A DNA stretch of 64,000 nt, taken from assembly GCF_021869535.1 (NCBI RefSeq), contig NW_026262676.1, forward strand, positions 620,001 to 684,000. The letters are read 5' to 3'. A model generated the notes under the pieces. The model was not told the origin of the DNA. It saw only the letters and a program-made list of their open reading frames with translations, and did no database searches. Positions 6,369-64,000 of this stretch are shown here, in pieces. The stretch's first letter is position 1. Every line of letters starts with the position of its first letter. The position numbers and the translations under genes are program-made. This DNA comes from Mytilus californianus (Eukaryota).

Positions 6369-6748
6369 TGATTGATTGATTGTTGTTTGCTTAACGTCCA
6401 GTGGCAAATATTTCATGCATATTCAGGACTAGAACAAATTAACAATAAATACAATTAGTAGGTTCTGTAATAAAGGCGTCCGGGAAAAAGGTCGGAGAAA
6501 TTTAGACGGCCACGGTAAATGAGGGTATACTGGATAGGGAGTTGTTGCAAGGGTTCTTAACGTGCAAAGAGCGTGGCACTCTCTCTACACGAGGCATCGG
6601 ATTTAACATCCCCATTCTGACCGGACGTGGCTGCAAACTTGATACATCCCGCACAGCCAAACGGACGCCCCACTTTGGCAAGGGATCTACTGCCGGTCGG
6701 AGGAAGACCAATGGTGACCATATTTCTAATCCCCAGTCACCCTTGGGG
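6369..6748 (-). mobile_element. SINE-like family A, copy 4 (internal deletion)
   Basis: TSD AAGAACAAGTTGA at 6359-6371 and 6751-6763. Lacks the CAGAAATTT...CCCCTCAAAG segment near 6540. Confidence 0.95.
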
Positions 6749-8359: not shown

Positions 8360-9797
8360 AGCGATTACATCATGATGATGAAGAAAGAAGCCGAGTGTAC
8401 AGTTGCTCCATCTTCATCTCTATCACAACCAGAGTCCCAACCTAAATCAGATTCATCATCCGAGTCGCCACCAAATTCACTTTTAAAATACGCAAAAGAT
8501 TGATTGTTGGTTGCTTAACGTCCAGTGGCAAATATTTTATGCATATTCAGGACGAGAACAAATTAACAATAAATACAATAGGTAGGTTCTTTAATAGGGG
8601 CGTCAGGGGTTAAGGTCGGAGAAATTTAGACTACCACGGGAAATGATGGAATATTGGATAGGGACAGAAATTTTGCCTTGCAATAGGTCACCTACGGACC
8701 CCTCAAAGAGTTGTTGCAAGGGTTCTTAACGTGCAAAGAGCGTGGCACTCTCTTTACACGAGGCATCGGATTTAACGTCCCCATTCTGACCGGACGTGGC
8801 TGCGTACTTGTACATCCCGCACAGCCAAACGGACGCCCCACTTTAGCAAGGGTTTTACTGCCGGTCGGAGGAAGACCAATGGTGACCATACTTCTATACC
8901 CCAGTCACCCTTGGGGGAAATACGCAAAAGAAAAAGAATAATTCGTCCCGCAACTAAAACTTAAAAGGTCAAACATCGAGCCATTAATGAGTATGTTGAG
9001 CACTGGAGAGGGTGTCAACGACACGTACTAGTATAGGGCACCGTCAGTTTGTCCTGAACTAGCACCTCATCTATCTGCTCCGACCCCACCGTCACCAATA
9101 ACTACGTCAGCAACTCCGCCACCAATGTTTGTAACAACATCAACGCAAACACCAACACACAAGGACCAGTCGGCATTTTCACTCAAACAGTCTCTACAAG
9201 CAATTGAAAAACAGCTCCTACTCAGCAACACCAGACTCGCCGAGATGGAACGCATCATGACAACGCAAGGCAATATAATAAAAGAGCTAGTTTCTCAACA
9301 GAAAAAGCACACCTTACGCCGTTACCAGTCACACTTCCCACTACGCCAGCTACATCTACAACTCCAAGAATACTTTAAATTCTTTGCGATTTACTGCTCA
9401 CTCAAACATCTACTATCCCAGACTCGCCTCAACCTTGGCCACTTGCACAACGCCGCATATTTCCTATGCGTCTATTTCATGACATTCCCTAGTCTATGCG
9501 TCTACCGGAAGATGACTTTAGCAGGTATTCTGACTGTGGCACAAACCCGGGATCGTAGGGTATTTTACTACTTCAGAATTGTTTACAAACGACCAGCTTC
9601 GTATTAATTACTCGTACAGGGGCGGTGGTAATCTCAGTAAAAGGCCGCTAGAAGACAAAAGAAAGAACGTTATAAAGAGGTATGTCACTGCACTCTTCCC
9701 ATCAGTCAACACAGAGTCAGCCTACCATGCTTATATTGTTGAGAAGTTAAACCAGTATCTTCGTCGACTAGTCCAACCAGCCACCAGGAAGTGTTAA
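8360..9797 (+). pseudogene. BEN-domain protein pseudogene interrupted by SINE copy 5
   Basis: The C-terminal segment ELFTNDQLRINYSYRGGG...LEDKRKNVIKRYVTALFP...EKLNQYLRR fits the BEN domain. It is preceded by an S/P/T-rich region and a coiled-coil-like region, with frameshifts. Confidence 0.6.
8498..8917 (-). mobile_element. SINE-like family A, copy 5
   Basis: TSD AAATACGCAAAAGA at 8486-8499 and 8918-8931. Confidence 0.95.
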
Positions 9798-13062: not shown

Positions 13063-13796
13063 GATTGATTGATTGATTGATTGATTGTTGGTTGCTTAAC
13101 GTCCAATGGCAAATATTTCATGCATATTCAGGACGAGAACAAGTTCACAATAAATACAATAGGTAGGTTCTGTAATAGGTTAAGGGATTAAGGTCGGAGA
13201 AATTTAGACTGCCACGGAAAATGAGGGTATATTGGATAGGGACAGAAATTTAGCCTTGCAACAGGTCACCTACGGACCCCTCAAAGAGTTGTTGCAAGGG
13301 TTCTTAACGTGCAAAGAGCGTGGCACTCTCTTTACACGAGGCATCGGATTTAACGTCCCCATTCTGACCGGATTGATTGATTGATTGTTGGTTGCTTAAC
13401 GTCCAGTGGCAAATATTTCATGCATATTCAGGACGAGAACAAGTTCACAATAAATACAATAGGTAGGTTCTGTAATAGATTAAGGGATTAAGGTCGGAGA
13501 AATTTAGACTGCCACGGGAAATGAGGGTATATTGGATAGAGACAGAAATTTAGCCTTGCAACAGGTCACCTACGGACCCCTCAAAGAGTTGTTGCAAGGG
13601 TTCTTAACGTGCAAAGAGCGTGGCACTCTCTTTACACGAGGCATCGGATTTAACGTCCCCATTCTGACCGGACGTGGCTGCAAATTTGTACATCCCGCAC
13701 AGCCAAACGGACGCCCCACTTTAGCACGGGTTTTACTGCCGGTCGGAGGAAGACCAATGGTGACCATACTTCTATTCCCCAGTCACCCTTGGGGGG
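13063..13796 (-). mobile_element. SINE-like family A tandem dimer (full copy 13371-13796 plus 5'-truncated copy 13063-13370)
   Basis: A single TSD, TTGAAGCAACAGA at 13052-13064 and 13797-13809, flanks both units. Confidence 0.95.
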
Positions 13797-18885: not shown

Positions 18886-19294
18886 CCCCCAAGGGTGACT
18901 GGGGAATAGAAGTATGGTCACCATTGGTCTTCCTCCGACCGGCAGTAAAACCCGTGCTAAAGTGGGGCGTCCGTTTGGCTGTGCGGGATTTACAAATTTG
19001 CAGCCACGTCCGGTCAGAATGGGGACGTTAAATCCGATGCCTCGTGTAATGAGAGTGCCACGCTCTTTGCACGTTAAGAACCCTTGCAACAACTCTTTGA
19101 GGGGTCTGAAGGTGACCTGTTGCAAGGGTAAATTTCTGTCCCTATCCAATATACCCTCATTTCCCGTGGCAGTCTAAATTTCTCCGACCTTAATCTATTA
19201 CAGAACCTACCTATTGTATTTATTGTGAACTTGTTCTCGTCCTGAATATGCATGAAATATTTGCCACTGGACGTTAAGCAACCAACAATCAATC
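18886..19294 (+). mobile_element. SINE-like family A, copy 8 (element sense orientation)
   Basis: Starts CCCCCAAGGGTGACTGGGG and ends GGACGTTAAGCAACCAACAATCAATC. Imperfect TSD CTAA(G/T)TGTGCG. Confidence 0.95.
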
Positions 19295-46215: not shown

Positions 46216-49200
46216 CTGGACTTGTACTGTCCTTTGACAATAGGCTCCAATAAATTAACTGCCCTATACATACCAAGGTGGTCAGGTGTGTTCCTTGTCA
46301 TGTCTGTACCTTGTAATCCTGGGGAGTTCATTGTTAAACTGAAAAATTTAACATAGTGTACATTAATTTAATGCCATGAATAGTTTAGCATGACACAACA
46401 ATCCTGTAACCAAATAAAAGAAACTGCCATGATATAAAATATAAGAATGGTCAAAGTTCTTATTTCATTTACCTATTTAAGTAAAGACTTCTTTCTTTTT
46501 CAAGTAAATTTAACATGTGTTTATTTTTTCTCTCTAGTCAGTTAAAAGATATTGCAGTTTCTTCAATTTTCATACTGATATTCTTATAACACCTATATTC
46601 TTGCTACGATATCTGTTCATTTATCATGGCAAACTCTAACACAATGTCTTTCTTGATAAAGAATAAACCTAAGTGTATCATTTAATTGTACATGTACTAA
46701 ATGTATGCAGATCTGTGCAAGTTTGACACATATAAATTCATGTATGATGCTCAACCTTCATATATAAAATTTCATTAAAACCTGTTCAATGATTTAGAAT
46801 GAGTTGTGCTTACAAGGTACGTGGACATATGGACAGATTAAGTGACTTGGAAATACCTAAACATCAAGGTGTTCTCCTTTTAGAGTAAGAAATAAAGGAC
46901 GGATGTAATAAAATAGATTTTTTTTGTTGACAAACAAAATTTGTGAGAAACTGAAATATTTCATCCAAATAATTTTCAATTAAAACATCTATTTAATTTA
47001 TTTATTTCTTTACCTACACAGGTTTAGATTTTTTTACCTGTTTAGGTAAAGATTTCATACCAAATGGCTTAAATATAAGACAACAATATGGCTATGTTGC
47101 ATTTAGGTCAATTCCATATTGTTTCATCAGATGAATGGTTTTATTAAATTTTGACTGTCACAATTACAGCAGCTGAAGCAGAAAACAAATAAAATGTAAC
47201 CAAATAAAAGAATCTGCCATGATATAAAATTTAAGAATGGTGAAAGTTCTTATTTCATTTACCTATTTAAGTAAAGATTTCTTTCTTTTTCAAGTAAATT
47301 TAACATGTGTTTATTTTTTCTCTCTAGTCAGTTAAAAGATATTGCAGTTTCTTCAATTTTCATACTGATATTCTGATAACACCCATATTCTTGCTACGAT
47401 ATCTGTACATTGATCATGGCAAACTCAAACACAATGTCTTTTTTGATTAAAAATAAACCTTGTATCATTTAATTGTACATGTACTAAATGTATGCAGATC
47501 TGTGAAGTTCGACACATATAAATACATGTATGGTGCTAAACTTTCATATATAAAATTTCATTTAAACCCATTCAATGATTTAGAATGAAATGTGCATACA
47601 AGGTACATGAACATATGGACAGATTAAGTGACTTGGAATACCTATACATCAACATGATCAAGGTGTTCTCCCTTTAGAGTAAGAAATGAAGGAAGGATGT
47701 AATAAAATAGATTTTTTTTTTGACAAACAAAATTTGTGAGAAACTGAAATATTTCATCCAAATAATTTTCAATTAAAACATCTATTTAATTTATTTATTT
47801 CTTTACCTACATAGGTTTAGATTTTTTTACCTGTTTAGGTAAAGATTTCATACCAAAATGAAATGGCTTAAATATAAGACAACAATATGGCTATGTTGCA
47901 TTTAGGGCAATTCCATATTGTTTCATCAGATGAATGGTTTTAATAAAATTTGACTGTCACAATTACAGCAGCTGAAGCAGAAAACAAATAAACTGTAACC
48001 AAATAAAAGAATCTGCCATGATATAAAATATAAGAATGGTCAAAGTTCTTATTTCATTTACCTATTTAAGTAAAGACTTCTTTCTTTTTCAAGTAAATTT
48101 AACATGTGTTTATTTTTTCTCTCTAGTCAGTTAAATATATTGCAGTTTCTTCAATTTTCATACTGATATTCTGATAACACCCATATTCTTGCTACGATAT
48201 CTGTTCATTTATCATGGCAAACTCTAACACAATGTCTTTCTTGATAAAGAATAAACCTAAGTGTATCATTTAATTGTACATGTACTAAATGTATGCAGAT
48301 CTGTGAAAGTTTGACACATATAAATACATGTATGGTGCTCAACCTTCATATATAAAATTTCATTAAAACCCATTCAATGATTTAGAATGAGTTGTGCATA
48401 CAAGGTAAATGAACATATGGACAGATTAAGTGACTTGGAAATACCTATACATCAACATGATCAAGGTGTTCTCCCTTTAGAGTAAGAAATGAAGGAAGGA
48501 TGTAATAAAATAGATTTTTTTTTTGACAAACAAAATTTGTGAGAAACTGAAATATTTCATCCAAATAATTTTCAATTAAAACATCTATTTAATTTATTTA
48601 TTTCTTTACCTACACAGGTTTAGATTTTTTTACCTGTTTAGGTAAAGATTTCATACCAAATGGCTTAAGTATAAGACAACAATATGGCTATGTTGCATTT
48701 AGGGAAATTCCATATTGTTTCATCAGATGAATGGTTTTAATAAAATTTGACTGTCACAATTACAGCAGCTGAAGCAGAAAACAAATAAACTGTAACCAAA
48801 TAAAAGAATCTGCCATGATATAAAATATAAGAATGGTCAAAGTTCTTATTTCATTTACCTATTTAAGTAAAGATTTCTTTCTTTTTCAAGTAAATTTAAC
48901 ATGTGTTTATTTTTTCTCTCTAGTCAGTTAAAAGATATTGCAGTTTCTTCAATTTTCATACTGATATTCTTATAACACCTATATTCTTGCTACGATATCT
49001 GTTCATTTATCATGGCAAACTCTAACACAATGTCTTTCTTGATAAAGAATAAACCTAAGTGTATCATTTAATTGTACATGTACTAAATGTATGCAGATCT
49101 GTGCAAGTTTGACACATATAAATTCATGTATGATGCTCAACCTTCATATATAAAATTTCATTAAAACCTGTTCAATGATTTAGAATGAGTTGTGCTTACA

Positions 49201-50683
49201 AGGTACGTGGACATATGGACAGATTAAATGACTTGGAAATACCTAAACATCAAGGTGTTCTCCTTTTAGAGTAAGAGAAAATGGACGGATGTAATAAACA
49301 TGATAAAACAGATTTTTTTTTTGTTGACAAACAAAATTTGGGAGAAACTGAAATATTTCATCCAAATCATTTTCAATTAAAACATCTATTTAATTTATTT
49401 ATTTCTTTACCCACACGGGTTTAGATTTTTTTTACCTGTTTAGGTAAAGATTTCATACCAAATGGCTTAAGTATAAGACAACAATATGGATATGTTGCAT
49501 TTAGGGCAATTCCATATTGTTTCATCAGATGAATGGTTTTATTAAATTTTGACTGTCACAATTACAGCAGCTGAAGCAGAAAACAAATAAAATGTAACCA
49601 AATAAAAGAATCTGCCATGATATAAAATATAAGAATGGTCAAAGTTCTTATTTCATTTACCTATTTAAGTAAAGACTTCTTTCTTTTTCAAGTAAATTTA
49701 ACATGTGTTTATTTTTTCTCTCTAGTCAGTTAAAAGATATTGCAGTTTCTTCAATTTTCATACTGATATTCTGATAACACCCATATTCTTGCTACGATAT
49801 CTGTACATTTATCATGGCAAACTCAAACACAATGTCTTTCTTGATTAAAAATAAACCTTGTATCATTTAATTGTACATGTACTAAATGTATGCAGATCTG
49901 TGAAGTTCGACACATATAAATACATGTATGGTGCTAAACTTTCATATATAAAATTTCATTTAAACCCATTCAATAATTTAGAATGAGTTGTGCATACAAG
50001 GTACATGAACATATGGACAGATTAAGTGACTTGGAAATACCTATACATCAACATGATCAAGGTGTTCTCCCTTTAGAGTAAGAAATGAAGGAAGGATGTA
50101 ATAAAATAGATTTTTTTTTTAACAAACAAAACTTGTGAGAAACTGAAATATTTCATCCAAATAATTTTCAATTAAAACATCTATTTAATTTATTTATTTC
50201 TTTACCTACATAGGTTTAGATTTTTTTACCTGTTTAGGTAAAGATTTCATACCAAATGGCTTAAATATAAGACAACAATATGGCTATGTTGCATTTAGGG
50301 CAATTCCATATTGTTTCATCAGATGAATGGTTTTAATAAAATTTGACTGTCACAATTACAGCAGCTGAAGCAGAAAACAAATAAACTGTAACCAAATAAA
50401 AGAATCTGCCATGATATAAAATATAAGAATGGTCAAAGTTCTTATTTCATTTACCTATTTAAGTAAAGACTTCTTTCTTTTTCAAGTAAATTTAACATGT
50501 GTTTATTTTTTCTCTCTAGTCAGTTAAATATATTGCAGTTTCTTCAACTTTCATACTGATATTCTGATAACACCCATATTCTTGCTACGATATCTGTTCA
50601 TTTATCATGGCAAACTCTAACACAATGTCGTTCTTGATAAAGAATAAACCTAAGTGTATCATTTAATTGTACATGTACTAAAT

Positions 50684-50830
50684 GCCCCCCGGTGGATCGC
50701 TATCCTTGCCGTGGTCGGGGGGTTTGCGTGTCTCAGTGACCCCAAGAGCTATGCCAGCTGGAGCTTCGTCTCCTGGTAGGGTTACCCATGCTGGACAGGT
50801 CGAAGGGTAGAGACCAGACTAAAGTGATCC
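50684..50830 (+). ncRNA. Candidate HDV-like self-cleaving ribozyme at the LINE 5' end
   Basis: P1 (G)CCCCCCG with CGGGGGG(T). P2 GGATCGCT with AGTGATCC. Imperfect P3 around L3 TTGCCGT. Long P4. C50819-TAA before the P2 3' strand. Confidence 0.6.
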
Positions 50831-51443
50831 GAACATCGTACGAGTTGCCCGATGTTTTGAATAAAATAGGCTCTCCAACCCGTTTGCCGTGGGTTGCTAC
50901 CCGTGTCGGTGGTTGACGAGATCCTTGCGGATGAGGGCTGTAGCCAGACTCCTTACGGTCAGAAAATACCCGGACGGACAAGACTATAGTTCAATAAGCT
51001 GCTTTGGCTCCAATATCATCTAAACGGGAGGTCGGATGGACCCGGTTCGATCAATCGGCTGGTCATGTCGAGCCCTTTAGTTAATCCTCAACAATAAGCT
51101 TTCTTGTAACAATTTTCATGATATACACATGTGTTTTAAATAAAGCTATTTATATTTCGGATAACTGAAGAAGGCGATGGCTCATGGGTCAATCAAGTGG
51201 TACGCTTTCTATTTCGCTTGATGGATACGCTCTGCTTGAGTATACCATTCTTGGAACATCTGGTGCTTTCCGCAGTGGATCTTGGGTGCTAATTTTGGGG
51301 ACCAGCTACGTTATACATGTTATACTTGGAGCTCGTTTTCAGCATTAGCACTTGACCCCGGCTCGCCACGGAAACACAGCATCGCCCTTGTAGGCACTCC
51401 GAGGTGGGTGGATGACAAGAATGGTGAATCTTTCTCATTTCCT

Positions 51444-52973
51444 ATGGCACAACAAAACCAACCCTCTAAATCAGCTTTAATACATAAAAAAAGAAAATGT
51501 GATGATTCAGTGCCCTGTCAGGAAGATGACAGTTGGCCCAGATTTATTGTAATAAAAGGAACAGATGAAAAACCAATTTCCAAAATATCTCCCTTTGTGA
51601 TTCACAAACAAATTCAAAGCGTTGCTGGTACTGTAAAAAAAGTTTCAAAAATGAGATCAGGCAATTTGTTGGTTGAATGTTCCAACAAAAGTCAATCAAC
51701 AAATTTACTTACACTGACAACAATTACAAACTTTCCTGTTTCTGCCTCTCCTCACAACAGTTTGAACAGCTGTAAGGGGATCATTCGAGACAGAAGTCAA
51801 TACCTTGGTGACCTTACCGTGGAAGAAATCTGTGAGGAACTTTCAAGCCAAGGTGTAACTGATGTTGTTAGATTTCAAATAAAAAAGAATGGAAATATAA
51901 TCAAATTAAATACATATCTTTTGACATTTAGAAATCCAACTCCTCCTCCATCTATTACTTTAGGTTGCTTCGGAATCAGAGTTGACAGGTTTATCCCTAA
52001 CCCAATTCGATGCTTCACTTGTCAAAAGTTTGGTCATGGAAGCAAACAATGTCGTGGTACGCAGAGATGCTTCAAGTGTTCTGACGAAGGACACGAGGGA
52101 ACAACCTGTAGCTCTGAATCTTCTAAATGCGTAAACTGTGGTGAATCCCATTTTTCATCATCTAGGGACTGCCCTGTTTACCTTAAAGAAAAAAATATTA
52201 TCAAAATTAAAACAGAAAGAAACATCAGTTACCCAGAAGCTAAACAGATAGCTTCTGTTTCGAATGATCTCCTTGTTTCGAACAGACCATCGTACGCCAG
52301 CAAAGTTGTCCGCTCATTCAGTCACGAGCATACACAAACTCGCATGACCTGGCCAATTGATGCTGAGACATTTACAATGCTGCCTGTTGAAACAGAACCT
52401 AACGATAAAATATTAATTCCAAGAAAACCAACACCTTCTAAAACCAGTAATCAGTCAACTCAATCTTCCTTACAGAGCTCAATGTCATCATCTAAAAAAA
52501 ATGAAAAAAAGAAATCAAATAAAAAAGATACAGTAAAATCAGACAGTTGGGGCGGTGAATCTGTCTGGGATCTTCCCAGTGACATAGATGATTCTTCCAT
52601 CTCCAATAGTCCTCCTTCATCTGCATCTAATAAAACTAGTTTATCTTCTGCATCTAGTTCAAAGTCTTCTAAAGCCCCGTCTCCTCTTCGTTCTCCAGAA
52701 CAGAAGGATGTCCCAAAGAAGCCAGCAAATACATCCTCTCAGAAGTCTTCTGATTCGAGGTCGCGGGGTAGGGGTCGAGGCGGAGTAAAACCAGCTGCGC
52801 ATGGTCCTGGAGATCGACGACTCTCCTCACACAACAGATTTTCAACACTTAACGACGAATCAGAAATGGAAATCGAAAGTGTTCCGCCACCCGAAAGATT
52901 ACAATCTCAGGGTGAGCGAAATAAGAATGCTGGCAAACTCGATAGCATTCGCCCGTCTATTAACAAATCATGA
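51444..52973 (+). CDS. LINE ORF1 gag-like nucleic-acid-binding protein (509 aa, intact)
   Basis: PRFIVI...SPFVIHK...RSGNLLVEC N-terminal region, three zinc knuckles (CFTCQKFGHGSKQC, CFKCSDEGHEGTTC, CVNCGESHFSSSRDC) and a Ser/Lys-rich tail. The TGA overlaps the ORF2 ATG (ATGA). Confidence 0.9.
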   Translation: MAQQNQPSKSALIHKKRKCDDSVPCQEDDSWPRFIVIKGTDEKPISKISPFVIHKQIQSVAGTVKKVSKMRSGNLLVECSNKSQSTNLLTLTTITNFPVSASPHNSLNSCKGIIRDRSQYLGDLTVEEICEELSSQGVTDVVRFQIKKNGNIIKLNTYLLTFRNPTPPPSITLGCFGIRVDRFIPNPIRCFTCQKFGHGSKQCRGTQRCFKCSDEGHEGTTCSSESSKCVNCGESHFSSSRDCPVYLKEKNIIKIKTERNISYPEAKQIASVSNDLLVSNRPSYASKVVRSFSHEHTQTRMTWPIDAETFTMLPVETEPNDKILIPRKPTPSKTSNQSTQSSLQSSMSSSKKNEKKKSNKKDTVKSDSWGGESVWDLPSDIDDSSISNSPPSSASNKTSLSSASSSKSSKAPSPLRSPEQKDVPKKPANTSSQKSSDSRSRGRGRGGVKPAAHGPGDRRLSSHNRFSTLNDESEMEIESVPPPERLQSQGERNKNAGKLDSIRPSINKS

Positions 52974-53017
52974 CTAATATCATCCAATGGAATTGCCGAG
53001 GTCTTAAAATAAAATAA
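52970..53017 (+). pseudogene. ORF2 stub (start of the APE endonuclease)
   Basis: MTNIIQWNCRGLK is the canonical APE N-terminal WN(C/V)RG motif, followed at once by a stop. Confidence 0.85.
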
Positions 53018-54836
53018 ATTATTTCATGAATAAAATGCGGCGTAAAGCAAACAACAATCAATCAATCAATCTTTTAAAAAATGAAGTAGAACCACAATGT
53101 ATACCTTGTAACTGCAAGTATACTATTAAACATGTTTTAATCAATTGTATTGACTTTGCTGATATTCGGAAGAAGCATTTCAATGTCAATAATATGTATG
53201 ATTTATTTAATAATATTCCATTTACAAATATTGTTTCATTCTTAAAAGAAATTGGAATATATTATAAAATATAAAAATGTTGTTATATTTAAAACGATTT
53301 TAATTTTTATCACGTTATCTTAGTGTTGATTTTTATTTGTAAATAATCAATTTGCTTTAGTCTAGAATTTTAGTTTATTGAAAGACCTTTTGTCTGATTT
53401 TAAAAATATACCTTAAATTGTTATAATATTCGAATTAGCTCTCGCCGCGATATAGCCTTTCTGTGCTAATGCGGCGTAAAGCAAACAACAATCAATCAAT
53501 CAATCATGTACTAAATGTATGCAGATCTGTGAAAGTTTGACACATATAAATACATGTATGGTGCTCAACCTTCATATATAAAATTTCATTAACACCTGTT
53601 CAATGATTTAGAATGAGTTGTGCATACAAGGTACATGGACATATGGACAGATTAAGTGACTTGGAAATACCTATACATCAAGGTGGTCTCCCTTTAGAGT
53701 AAGAAATAAAGGACGGATGTAATAAAATAGATTTTTTTTTGTTGACAAACAAAATTTGTGAGAAACTGAAATATTTCATCCAAATAATTTTCAATTAAAA
53801 CATCTATTTAATTTATTTATTTCTTTACCTACACAGGTTTAGATTTTTTTACCTGTTTAGGTAAAGATTTCATACCAAATGGCTTAAATATAAGACAACA
53901 ATATGGCTATGTTGCATTTAGGGCAATTCCATATTGTTTCATCAGATGAATGGTTTTAATAAAATTTGACTGTCACAATTACAGCAGCTGAAGCAGAAAA
54001 CAAATAAACTGTAACCAAATAAAAGAATCTGCCATGATATAAAATATAAGAATGGTCAAAGTTCTTATTTCATTTACCTATTTAAGTAAAGACTTCTTTC
54101 TTTTTCAAGTAAATTTAACATGTGTTTATTTTTTCTCTCTAGTCAGTTAAAGATATTGCAGTTTCTTCAATTTTCATACTGATATTCTGATAACACCCAT
54201 ATTCTTGCTACGATATCTGTACATTCATCATGGCAAACTCAAACACAATGTCTTTCTTGATTAAAAATAAACCTTGTATCATTTTATTGTACATGTACTA
54301 AATGTATGCAGATCTGTGAAGTTTGACCCATATAAATACATGTATGGTGCTAAACTTTCATATATAAAATTTCATTGAAACCCATTCAATGATTTGTAAT
54401 TTTTTTTACTGATTTCTATCACTGGGATCACCTCTGGCCGCTGTAAAATGCATTTTTGATGCTATCTGTGGGAAATTTAAGTTTGCATTGTTGAAAATGT
54501 ATTTATCAAAGTTAGTCTGTATGTTAGGTGTAGATGCTCAAACATGATGTTACATCAATGTTTTTATGTCAACTTCTGCGAAAACAAAGGGATACATATA
54601 TGATTAGGGAGAGAAACAGGTACATGTAGTTTTCATTCTTTCTGTAACTGAAAATCTTCCTCATAAAAAAGAGCACCTCAAATGAAGAGTTTTATGAACC
54701 AAAGTTGATGTATCTATTACACCTATTAAAAATGTGATATTAAGATATGATATTAAAGTAGTCTTCTACCAAAACAAAATTTTATGTACTAACATAATGA
54801 AGGTACTAAAAAAAATTAGATTTTTAAATATAATTA

Positions 54837-62265: not shown

Positions 62266-62696
62266 TGATTGTTTGATTGATTGTTGGTTGCTTAATGTCC
62301 AGTGGCAAATATTTCATGCATATTCAGGACGAGAACAAATTAACAATAAATACAATAGGTAGGTTCTGTAATGTAGGCCATCTGGGAAGAAGGTCGGGGA
62401 AATTTAGACTATCGCTGGAAAATGAGGGTAAATTGGATAGGGACAGCAATTTTGCCTTGCAACAGGTCACCTACGGATCCCTCAAAGAGTTGTTGCAAGG
62501 GTTCTTAACGTGCCGAGAGCGTGGCATTCTCTCTACACGAAGCATCGGATTTAACGTCCCCCTTCTGAACGGACGTGGCTGCGTACTTGTACATCCCGCA
62601 CAGCCAAACGGACGCCCCACTTTAGCGAGGGTTTTACCGCCGGTCGGAGGAAGACCAATGGTGACCATATTTCTATTCCCCAGTCACCCTTGGGGG
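62266..62696 (-). mobile_element. SINE-like family A, copy 10
   Basis: Near-perfect TSD CTTTTGT(T/A)TTTGA at 62256-62268 and 62698-62710. Confidence 0.93.
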
Positions 62697-62839
62697 TCTT
62701 TTGTATTTGACATACAGGACATATATGTGTAACTCATCAACTAAACGAGATAGAGACTAAGGGTCTTTCGATTTGAGATCCTCCGACCCTACCATGAAAA
62801 TTGAGGCCAAGGTCATATTCTAAATTTTGCTATTTGAGT

Positions 62840-63978
62840 GATTGATTGATTGATTGGTGTTTGCTTTACGCCGCCTTAGCGCAAAAAGGCTATATCGCGG
62901 CGAGAGCTAATTCGAACATTTAACAATTTAAAGTATATTTTTAAAATGAGACAAAAGGTCCTACAATATACTACAACACAAGTCTAAAGCAAATATTTTA
63001 ATTTACAAATAAAAATCAACACTAAAATAAGGTGATACAAATTAGAATCATTTTCAATTTATACAACATTTTTATATTTTATAATATATTCCAACTTCTT
63101 TTAAGAATGAAACAATATTTGTAATTGGAACACTATCAAATAAATCATACATATTGTTGACATTGAAATGCTTCCTACGAATATCAGTAAAGTCAATACA
63201 ATTAATTAAAACATGTTTAACAGTATACTTGCAGTTGCAAGGTATACATTGTGGTTCTTCTTCATTTTTTAAAAGATACTCATGTGTTATTCTAGTATGA
63301 CCAATACGGCATCTAGAAATTACACACTGATCTTTTCTGCACGTAAAAGTATTAAAAGGTTTACCTAAATTAGGTTTAATTTCATGTAATTCATTATCAA
63401 CTTTTTCACTCCATTCATTTTCCAATATATTAAAAACATATTCTCGAATGTTAGATCTAAAATCGGTATATGGTATATCACAGTTAGATAAGGGATCATC
63501 CAGGGCATTTTTTGCTTCTTCGTCTACAACTGTATTTCCATGGATTCCAACATGACTCGGAACTCATAGAAAATAATTTCTTTATGAAGAATTTTTAAAT
63601 TCCTCATTACATATAAAATCTTGAGAATTATCAGGTTTTTAATTTTAGTATTTTGTATAGCTTGTAAGCACGAAAGTGAATCAGAAGATATTATAAATTG
63701 GGATTTGTCTGAAATAGCAATTAATTTCAAAGCTAAAATTATTGCCTTTGCTTCAGCAGTAAATATGGATGCGGCAGACGACAAACAGAGAGTCGCAGCT
63801 CTTGTCTCCAAAGACAGCAGCAGATGCAACTCTGTTACCATCCTTCGATCCATCTGTATAAACAGTTGAAAAATCTGAATAACTTGCGTTAATTTCAGCA
63901 AAATGTTGTTGAATTAAAAGAGGGTTGGTTTCTTTTTATTTTTGTATTTACGGAGGTCAAATATTATTTTCGGTTTTG
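62840..63978 (-). mobile_element. 5'-truncated I-group LINE: degenerate RNase H, C-terminal zinc motif and tail
   Basis: VYTDGSKDG, FTAEAKAI, SDSLSCL (RNase H D/E/D), RCRIGHTRITH...CIPC...HVLINC. 3' UTR and (AATC)n tail homologous to 53072-53504. Confidence 0.9.
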
Positions 63979-64000
63979 GATTGATTGATTGTTGGTTGCT
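63979..64000 (-). mobile_element. 3' tail of another SINE A copy, running off the window
   Basis: GATTGATTGATTGTTGGTTGCT. Confidence 0.75.

Follow-up and report, generated by a model that had tools for sequence, protein, structure and literature searches.

HDV-like ribozymes are carried by RTE and other LINE clades, and the L1Tc/ingi elements belong to the I group of LINEs. The HDV-like ribozymes of the trypanosomatid L1Tc/ingi elements have been tested for cleavage and cut 5′ of C1 (PMC3185411, PMC4035085). The GC pairs of their P1 are oriented opposite to those of HDV, and their P1.1 consists of one pair. A G at position −1 can extend P1, disrupting P1.1, and L1TcRz is attenuated by downstream sequence. 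In L1Tc and NARTc the first 77 nt (Pr77) serve as both promoter and ribozyme, and the authors of these studies judged the Webb descriptor too restrictive (PMC3185411, PMC4035085). HDV-like ribozymes tolerate large peripheral domains (PMC3774820, PMC4908430), and the Schistosoma element Perere-3 carries twister T-variants at its 5′ end (PMC8501958). In the literature, we found no paper that links HDV-like ribozymes to Nimb/I-type elements or to Mytilus LINEs.

We analyzed the leader of a LINE in a 64,000-nt stretch of Mytilus californianus DNA (hereafter the window, whose coordinates are used throughout). By analogy with the trypanosomatid ribozymes, we consider it somewhat probable that positions 50685–50831, with which a Mytilus I-group LINE begins, encode a self-cleaving HDV-like ribozyme of the L1Tc/ingi (Pr77/L1TcRz) type.

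Host element and its 5′ boundary

The element occupies positions 50685–53506 of the forward strand and is inserted in a satellite with a period of about 800 bp. Apart from the leader, the parts of the locus are as follows.

50672–50684, + strand: upstream target-site duplication (TSD) CATGTACTAAATG, 13 bp, lying within a monomer of the satellite; its last base, G50684, would be −1 relative to the proposed ribozyme
50832–51443, + strand: remainder, after the leader, of a 5′ UTR of 759 nt in total, including a conserved block at about 50879–51075
51444–52973, + strand: intact ORF1 of 509 aa, with CCHC knuckles visible in the translation
52972–53506, + strand: ORF2 start (about 15 codons), an internal copy of the 3′ tail (53033–53070) and the last 440 nt or so with a (CAAT)n tail

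The identity of the satellite flank to other monomers ends at 50684 and picks up again at 53505, and a second copy of the 13-mer TSD lies at 53505–53517. Other satellite monomers, for example at 48279–48291, represent the empty site. Two further full-length Mytilus copies (L001 and L004) begin at the equivalent C behind unrelated flanks. Because the empty-site monomers, the TSD with G50684 in it, and the starts of L001 and L004 agree, the first base of the element is C50685 and G50684 is target DNA. The original prediction had placed the cleavage site at the insertion boundary, and the predicted site does coincide with the boundary mapped here. It had also allowed a G·U first pair of P1 with G50684. 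That pair is really a −1 extension of P1: G50684 is flank, and its partner U50723 is private to this copy. L001 and L004 both have C at position 50723, as do 84414 of the 84503 depth units of a Mytilus DNA run.

Only about 15 codons of ORF2 precede the 3′ end, and the element is therefore internally deleted and non-autonomous. Matches to ORF1 with 75–99% identity are present in Mytilus trossulus, M. galloprovincialis, and M. edulis. The ORF2 of full-length relatives contains Exo_endo_phos, RVT_1, and RNase_H domains (APE, RT, and RNase H), and APE and RT were detected in the Mytilus copy L001. Based on the APE, RT, and RNase H of these relatives, the element belongs to the I group (RNase H-bearing LINEs), an assignment made at the group level.

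Several other features of this LINE family were observed. The element has two 3′ tails, since a copy of its final ~38 nt (53033–53070) lies between the ORF2 start and the last 440 nt. Both tails are enclosed by a single TSD pair, which is compatible with template switching in reverse transcription. A second copy of the family, with 90.7% identity across the final 440 nt, is found at 62839–64000 (− strand); its ORF2 end reaches the window edge, and its 5′ end is outside the window. The conserved block of the 5′ UTR matched the relatives L005 and L006 in nhmmer with E values of 1e-14 to 1e-18, and it is also present in L017 and L138. This block of ~200 nt has about 63% identity across these four distant relatives, opens with the hairpin GCCGUGGG-YUGCNN-CCCGUG, and closes with a stretch resembling GGUUCGAUC. 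We also considered, and rejected, the idea that the leader arose as a duplicate of this downstream block. The 9-mer UUGCCGUGG occurs in both, but their local alignment lacks significance, with 32 of 300 shuffles scoring as high.

Strand order of the leader and its predicted fold

The HDV strand order P1a-P2a-P3a-L3-P3b-P1b-(P1.1)-P4-J4/2-P2b is present in full at 50685–50831 and begins at C50685, the first base of the LINE. This is the double-pseudoknot order that had been proposed, and every strand then listed was confirmed on the sequence. The strands and predicted helices are given below.

50685–50691, + strand: P1 5′ strand CCCCCCG, pairing with 50716–50722; C50685 is the predicted +1, with cleavage 5′ of it
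C50685–G50722 through G50691–C50716, + strand: P1 helix, 7 bp
G50692 and U50693, + strand: J1/2
50694–50701, + strand: P2 5′ strand GGAUCGCU, 8 bp with 50823–50830
G50694–C50830 through U50701–A50823, + strand: P2 helix, 8 bp including one G·U, plus U50693·G50831 (8–9 bp)
50702–50715, + strand: P3 A(U)CC/GGU, with A50702–U50715, C50704–G50714, and C50705–G50713; U50703 is bulged
50706–50712, + strand: L3 UUGCCGU, enclosed by P3
50716–50723, + strand: P1 3′ strand CGGGGGG followed by 50723, the proposed one-pair P1.1 partner of G50708
50724–50729, + strand: J1.1/4 UUGCGU
within 50724–50815, + strand: enlarged, branched P4 domain (J1.1/4–P4 region of ~95 nt), closed by G50728–C50815 and GUCUC/GAGAC (50730–50734/50810–50814)
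50816–50822, + strand: J4/2 AGACUAA; C50819 is the candidate catalytic cytosine, and CUAA stands directly before the P2 3′ strand
50823–50831, + strand: P2 3′ strand AGUGAUCC(G)

An MFE fold computed without constraints also contains the P2 helix. As anticipated, P4 is enlarged: both sub-helices (CCAGC/GCUGG and GGAG/CUCC) are present in addition to the closing pairs. P1.1 lacks the canonical GG/CC, and one pair (G50708–C50723) is possible in the consensus, with G·U in its place in this copy. An alternative GUC/GAC register would pair C50819 with G50730.

Known-family models did not recognize the leader. Rfam gave no match to it at gathering score (window and 20 related loci), and at E values up to 10 no ribozyme family was found on a 601-nt slice with the leader or on L001, L004, L005, and L006. 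A published HDV-like descriptor has a purine at +1 paired to a pyrimidine and a 3-bp Watson–Crick P3, together with L3 TYYHCG*Y, ‘RN’ after P1, and CNRA before the P2 3′ strand (RNArobo supplement, PMC4870747). The leader agrees with this descriptor in strand order, P1, P2, and CNRA; in its strict form the descriptor does not match, failing at the +1 rule, L3 position 3, ‘RN’, and the clean P3. The purine:pyrimidine first pair (G1·U37 of the Webb/Luptak descriptor) is absent, the first pair here being C50685–G50722. The L3 sequence UUGCCGU fits 6 of the 7 positions of TYYHCGY and all 7 of the trypanosomatid U-Y-R-N-C-G-U. Standard descriptors and Rfam models overlook ribozymes of the L1Tc type, in which +1 is C, the polarity of P1 is reversed, and P1.1 is a single pair. 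Twister, hammerhead, and other classes were considered by eye and rejected; the twister signature motifs (loop GUCCCAAGC and others) are absent.

The core of the leader was compared part by part with the trypanosomatid ribozymes, whose P2, P3, and L3 assignments are our manual parse of supplement sequences and primers rather than the authors’ figures.

P1: CCCUGGC/GCCAGGG in L1Tco/NARTco; CCUUGAU/AUCAAGG in TvSIDER1; CCC(C/U)CCG/CGGGGGG in the Mytilus consensus
P3: ACC/GGU in L1Tco/NARTco; GCC/GGC in TvSIDER1; A(U)CC/GGU in Mytilus
L3: UCAACGU in L1Tco/NARTco; UCAUCGU in TvSIDER1; UUGCCGU in Mytilus
Base after P1: U in L1Tco/NARTco and TvSIDER1, able to pair with A at L3 position 3; C50723 in Mytilus, able to pair with G50708
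Before the P2 3′ strand: ...GGAAG-CUAA and two bases in L1Tco/NARTco; CUAA and then directly a 10-bp P2 strand in TvSIDER1; AGA-CUAA and then the P2 3′ strand in Mytilus

The putative single P1.1 pair would thus be A–U in the trypanosomatids and G–C in the mussel consensus, and it is C–G in HDV. An odd P1.1 and an imperfect P3 had been raised as caveats from the start. The one-pair P1.1, the C at +1, and the L3 U-Y-R-N-C-G-U of L1Tc/ingi explain them in part; P3 is still bulged.

From the trypanosomatid ribozymes we derived a descriptor with a 7-bp P1, a 3-bp P3 (one bulge allowed), L3 U-Y-R-N-C-G-U, one P1.1 pair, CUAA, a spacer of 0–2 nt, and a P2 that has 6 bp or more and ends at P3. On both strands of the 64-kb window it has one match, at 50685/50716/50819/50823. 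When the window was dinucleotide-shuffled 300 times, 4 of the shuffles contained a match; 3000 shuffles of the 5′ UTR contained none, and neither did about 1 Mb of other loci. The descriptor matches L001 with a Watson–Crick P1.1. It misses L004 because the P2 3′ strand of that copy has two changes, which break two P2 pairs.

These counts bear on a chance resemblance, in which G/C runs and a few complementary stretches of a GC-rich leader would imitate the HDV scheme. The folding energies, which are not better than those of shuffles (z of +1.06 for the whole segment and +0.58 for P4), are consistent with chance, and the P3 bulge was allowed in the descriptor after the mussel sequence had been seen. 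Since the energies do not exceed those of shuffles, stability alone is uninformative. The descriptor match is rare, however, and coincides exactly with the independently mapped element start, and for these reasons chance is very unlikely.

Sequence variation of the leader is low. Only three positions within 146 nt (50723, 50746, and 50758) were more than 5% variable in Mytilus DNA reads. The variant at 50758 retains a G·U pair, and so does the C50688U variant in P1. The mussel copies are 93–95% identical, and covariation among them is uninformative because they are too alike.

The 5′ module of relatives and a SINE partner

Divergent ORF1 homologues were traced to their contigs and carry a different 5′ module exactly at the first base. 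These module-bearing relatives are L005, L006, L008–L015, L017 (Haliotis rufescens), and L138 (a Tara sample). L138 is the closest non-Mytilus relative, with 54% ORF1 identity, and its module is not in HDV order. The module hairpin GUCG-UAARAGG-CGAC-UAA, used as a search pattern, was found in at least 120 JGI metagenome contigs (L018–L137), some of which we take to be from gutless-worm samples. Many LINEs and SINE-like elements, lophotrochozoan relatives included, begin with this module. Rfam did not match it, and its hairpin motif string was found in no paper. Some metagenome copies have CUGAUGA downstream, for which Rfam gave no match either.

The structure of the module was assessed in an alignment of 45 distinct instances. 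Helix H1 pairs the 5′ CCCCG with CGGGG, and B is a 7-bp pseudoknot between the H1 loop and a strand after an invariant AGAAU. H2 takes forms such as CCUGG/CCAGG, CCAGG/CCUGG, and CCUCCU/AGGAGG, and D is the stem of the hairpin. In this alignment, 93.3% of the cells are paired vs 33–55% when the strands are slid, 9 pairs are changed on both sides, and 0 of 500 shuffles reach the observed values. The D stem is invariant because the search pattern fixed it. The order is H1a-Ba-H1b-AGAAUA-Bb, followed by the separate hairpin H2/D, so that the hairpin lies 3′ of the pseudoknot; this is not the HDV topology. The module lacks P3/L3, as only about 9 nt separate the two H1 strands.

Two other folds of the module were tried and rejected. 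Forcing it into the HDV fold fails in every register, with no room for P2a and P3. A fold in which the G-run after CUAA is the partner of the 5′ C-run is ruled out by the copies with CCUGG/CCAGG, CCAGG/CCUGG, and CCUCCU/AGGAGG. These H2 variants show that the two strands flanking the hairpin, one before it and one after CUAA, pair with each other, and that the partner of the 5′ C-run is a nearby G-run.

The module and the mussel leader have several elements in common. Both stand at the first base of the element and have a 5′ C-run/G-run helix, a second strand in a pseudoknot, and an A-rich AGA(A/C)UA(G/A) just before the 3′ strand of the pseudoknot. In both, a stem GUC../..GAC is followed by UAA(A) and a helix strand. 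The small hairpin GUCG-UAARAGG-CGAC of the relatives shares its GUC/GAC stem letters and the flanking UUGCGU and CUAAA with the mussel P4. Mollusc-type modules share the blocks CUUGCGUGUC and GACUAAA with the leader, and CUUGCGUGUC is present in mollusc-type modules only. In the relatives, the C equivalent to C50819 is paired, in the last pair of GUCG/CGAC. For this reason CUAA counts as an inherited sequence block and not as independent evidence. The differences are also clear. The module has no P3/L3 and has an A in the linker where the HDV C would be, whereas the leader lacks the invariant AGAAU linker and helix H2.

The leader may instead be a 5′ element that is structured without being catalytic; the pseudoknot module would have been re-wired in this lineage, with the HDV order as a by-product. 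Such an element could be bound by the LINE’s own proteins, protect the 5′ end, act in translation, or be the RNA counterpart of an internal promoter. This is the main rival explanation, and we regard it as possible but doubtful. The module helices H1, B, H2, and D have covariation support, and the missing P3/L3 and the hairpin outside the pseudoknot mean that the 5′ function of the lineage needs no HDV fold. The 5′ C-run helix and the shared mollusc-type blocks in the leader fit such an origin as well. On the other hand, the AGAAU linker and H2 of the relatives are missing from the leader, which has gained exactly the missing HDV parts (P3, L3, the P1.1 partner, and the P2 3′ strand after CUAA) with letters as in the tested ribozymes. 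To our knowledge, no non-catalytic RNA function has been described for a module exactly at a LINE 5′ end, and this also counts against a non-catalytic role.

A covariance model of the module, built from metagenome and mollusc copies, was run on the window and gave seven matches with E values of 0.001–0.23. They are the heads of a SINE of ~420 nt, at the following positions.

18887–18969, + strand: SINE head
8834–8916, 13712–13794, 62613–62695, 1846–1928, 6666–6748, and 1021–1104, all − strand: SINE heads

In 5 of the 7, the 3′ tail of the LINE (GCGGCGTAAAGCAAACAACAATCAATC...) lies 380–430 nt downstream on the same strand. Since these five copies share their 3′ tail with the LINE, they probably represent a SINE partner of the mussel LINE. 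The SINE partner and the nearest relatives thus use the non-HDV module, and the mussel LINE carries the HDV-order leader. The leader may have been derived from the module by the loss of AGAAUA-Bb-H2a, the gain of P3/L3, and a switch of the second strand to a new partner, the strand that follows CUAA, as the shared blocks suggest. An RTE-type leader exchanged between LINE clades, as first suggested, is not supported, because the nearest tested analogue is on the I-group L1Tc/ingi elements and the leader shares blocks with the module of its own lineage.

It is also conceivable, although we think it unlikely, that the module itself is a 5′-processing ribozyme, either a permuted or reduced relative of HDV or a new class, which the Mytilus LINE converted into, or back into, HDV order. 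The mussel leader would then be one face of a larger, undescribed family of 5′-terminal pseudoknots on LINEs and SINEs, many of them from molluscs. The widespread non-HDV module is the more novel lead.

Module copies occur in some further arrangements. In one subfamily (L035, L089, L105, and L110) a tRNA-like stretch (...GGTAGTCTAGTGGTAA...) is directly 3′ of the module, which is then upstream of a tRNA-derived SINE body and outside a polymerase III start. L006 contains two 5′ UTR monomers of ~440 nt at 1891–2770, each headed by the module, and also two short SINE-like copies. Two modules are back to back at 1370–1520 of L055. The tandem modules of L006 and L055 are reminiscent of the tandem Pr77 signatures of trypanosomatid SIDER2.

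Transcripts, proposed mechanism and known systems

RNA across the boundary was inspected in one raw-read run of the species, with 38 reads in all. About 10 reads cover 50685–50744, and 8 of them run on upstream, by a median of 89 nt, into heterogeneous flanks. Read starts do not accumulate at 50685 among the 38 reads. The boundary is also bridged by contigs of two runs labelled as RNA, one of them only by a guess. Although the numbers are small, the reads count against fast and complete cleavage in that sample, and their mostly uncut state at the boundary is in line with a structured element without catalysis. One RNA-run contig begins at 50687, but contigs cannot show RNA ends. This start is of interest for a dual element like Pr77 of L1Tc, with an internal RNA polymerase II promoter in the DNA and a ribozyme in the RNA, for which the first 77 nt of L1Tc/NARTc are the precedent. 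With no read-start pile-up at 50685, we hold such a dual function to be quite unlikely here; it would extend the ribozyme reading and is not a true alternative to it.

For the L1Tc-type ribozyme, which we prefer, we infer the fold, catalysis, and biological role as follows. Transcription from outside, here from the satellite, would yield an RNA that folds into the nested double pseudoknot. P1 would stack on the one-pair P1.1 and the large P4, and P2 on P3. C50819 in J4/2 would act as the general acid, and the chain would be cut 5′ of C50685. The released element RNA would still hold the whole ribozyme, and each new copy would begin at the same C. The window copy is probably a weakened example, because pairing of its −1 G with U50723 can lengthen P1 and its P1.1 would be G·U and not G–C.

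If the leader cleaves, L1Tc-type HDV-like ribozymes extend from the LINEs of kinetoplastids to an abundant metazoan I-group LINE. Cleavage would also explain the precise 5′ end of the mussel elements from read-through transcription. With its HDV order, the LINE leader would then form a natural pair with the module of the SINE and the closest relatives, which is wired differently and shares sequence blocks with it. Such a pair could show the gain, loss, or permutation of a double-pseudoknot ribozyme.

Among described ribozymes, HDV genomic and antigenomic RNA and CPEB3 share with the leader the nested double-pseudoknot order, a P1 of 7 bp, a P2 of ~7 bp, a J4/2 CNRA abutting the P2 3′ strand, and an L3 ending in CG(N)Y. 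They differ in the first pair, as the mussel +1 is a C paired with G rather than a purine paired with a pyrimidine (there is no G·U), and in L3 position 3, which is G and not Y. The mussel bases after P1 are C/U and then U instead of ‘RN’, and its P3 is not three clean Watson–Crick pairs. R2, other LINE-borne HDV-like ribozymes, and drz-Agam-2 (PMC3774820, PMC4908430) resemble the leader in large insertions outside the core, and they trim a co-transcript precisely at the 5′ boundary of the element, as is predicted for the mussel. The large domain studied in them is mostly in J1/2, whereas in the mussel it is P4 that is expanded, J1/2 having 2 nt. The Perere-3 twister (PMC8501958) has a different fold but likewise stands at the 5′ end of a non-LTR element whose TSDs directly adjoin the cleavage site, which here is a predicted one.

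The closest system is L1TcRz/Pr77. The putative mussel ribozyme differs from it in its mollusc rather than kinetoplastid host, the separate zinc-knuckle ORF1 of its LINE, a branched P4 of ~85 nt instead of a hairpin of ~17 nt, a bulged U in P3, and a J1.1/4 of 6 nt, and sequence homology does not go beyond short core motifs. Both are placed at the +1 of a LINE, and +1 is C. Both have a 7-bp GC-rich P1 with GC orientation opposite to HDV, P3 ACC/GGU (with the bulge in the mussel), the 7-nt L3 U-Y-R-N-C-G-U, a one-pair P1.1 (a possible one in the mussel) between L3 position 3 and the pyrimidine after P1, and CUAA before the P2 3′ strand, and in both a G at −1 is able to extend P1 at the cost of P1.1. 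The short derivatives NARTc and SIDER keep a 5′ module, and so does the mussel SINE, in its non-HDV form.
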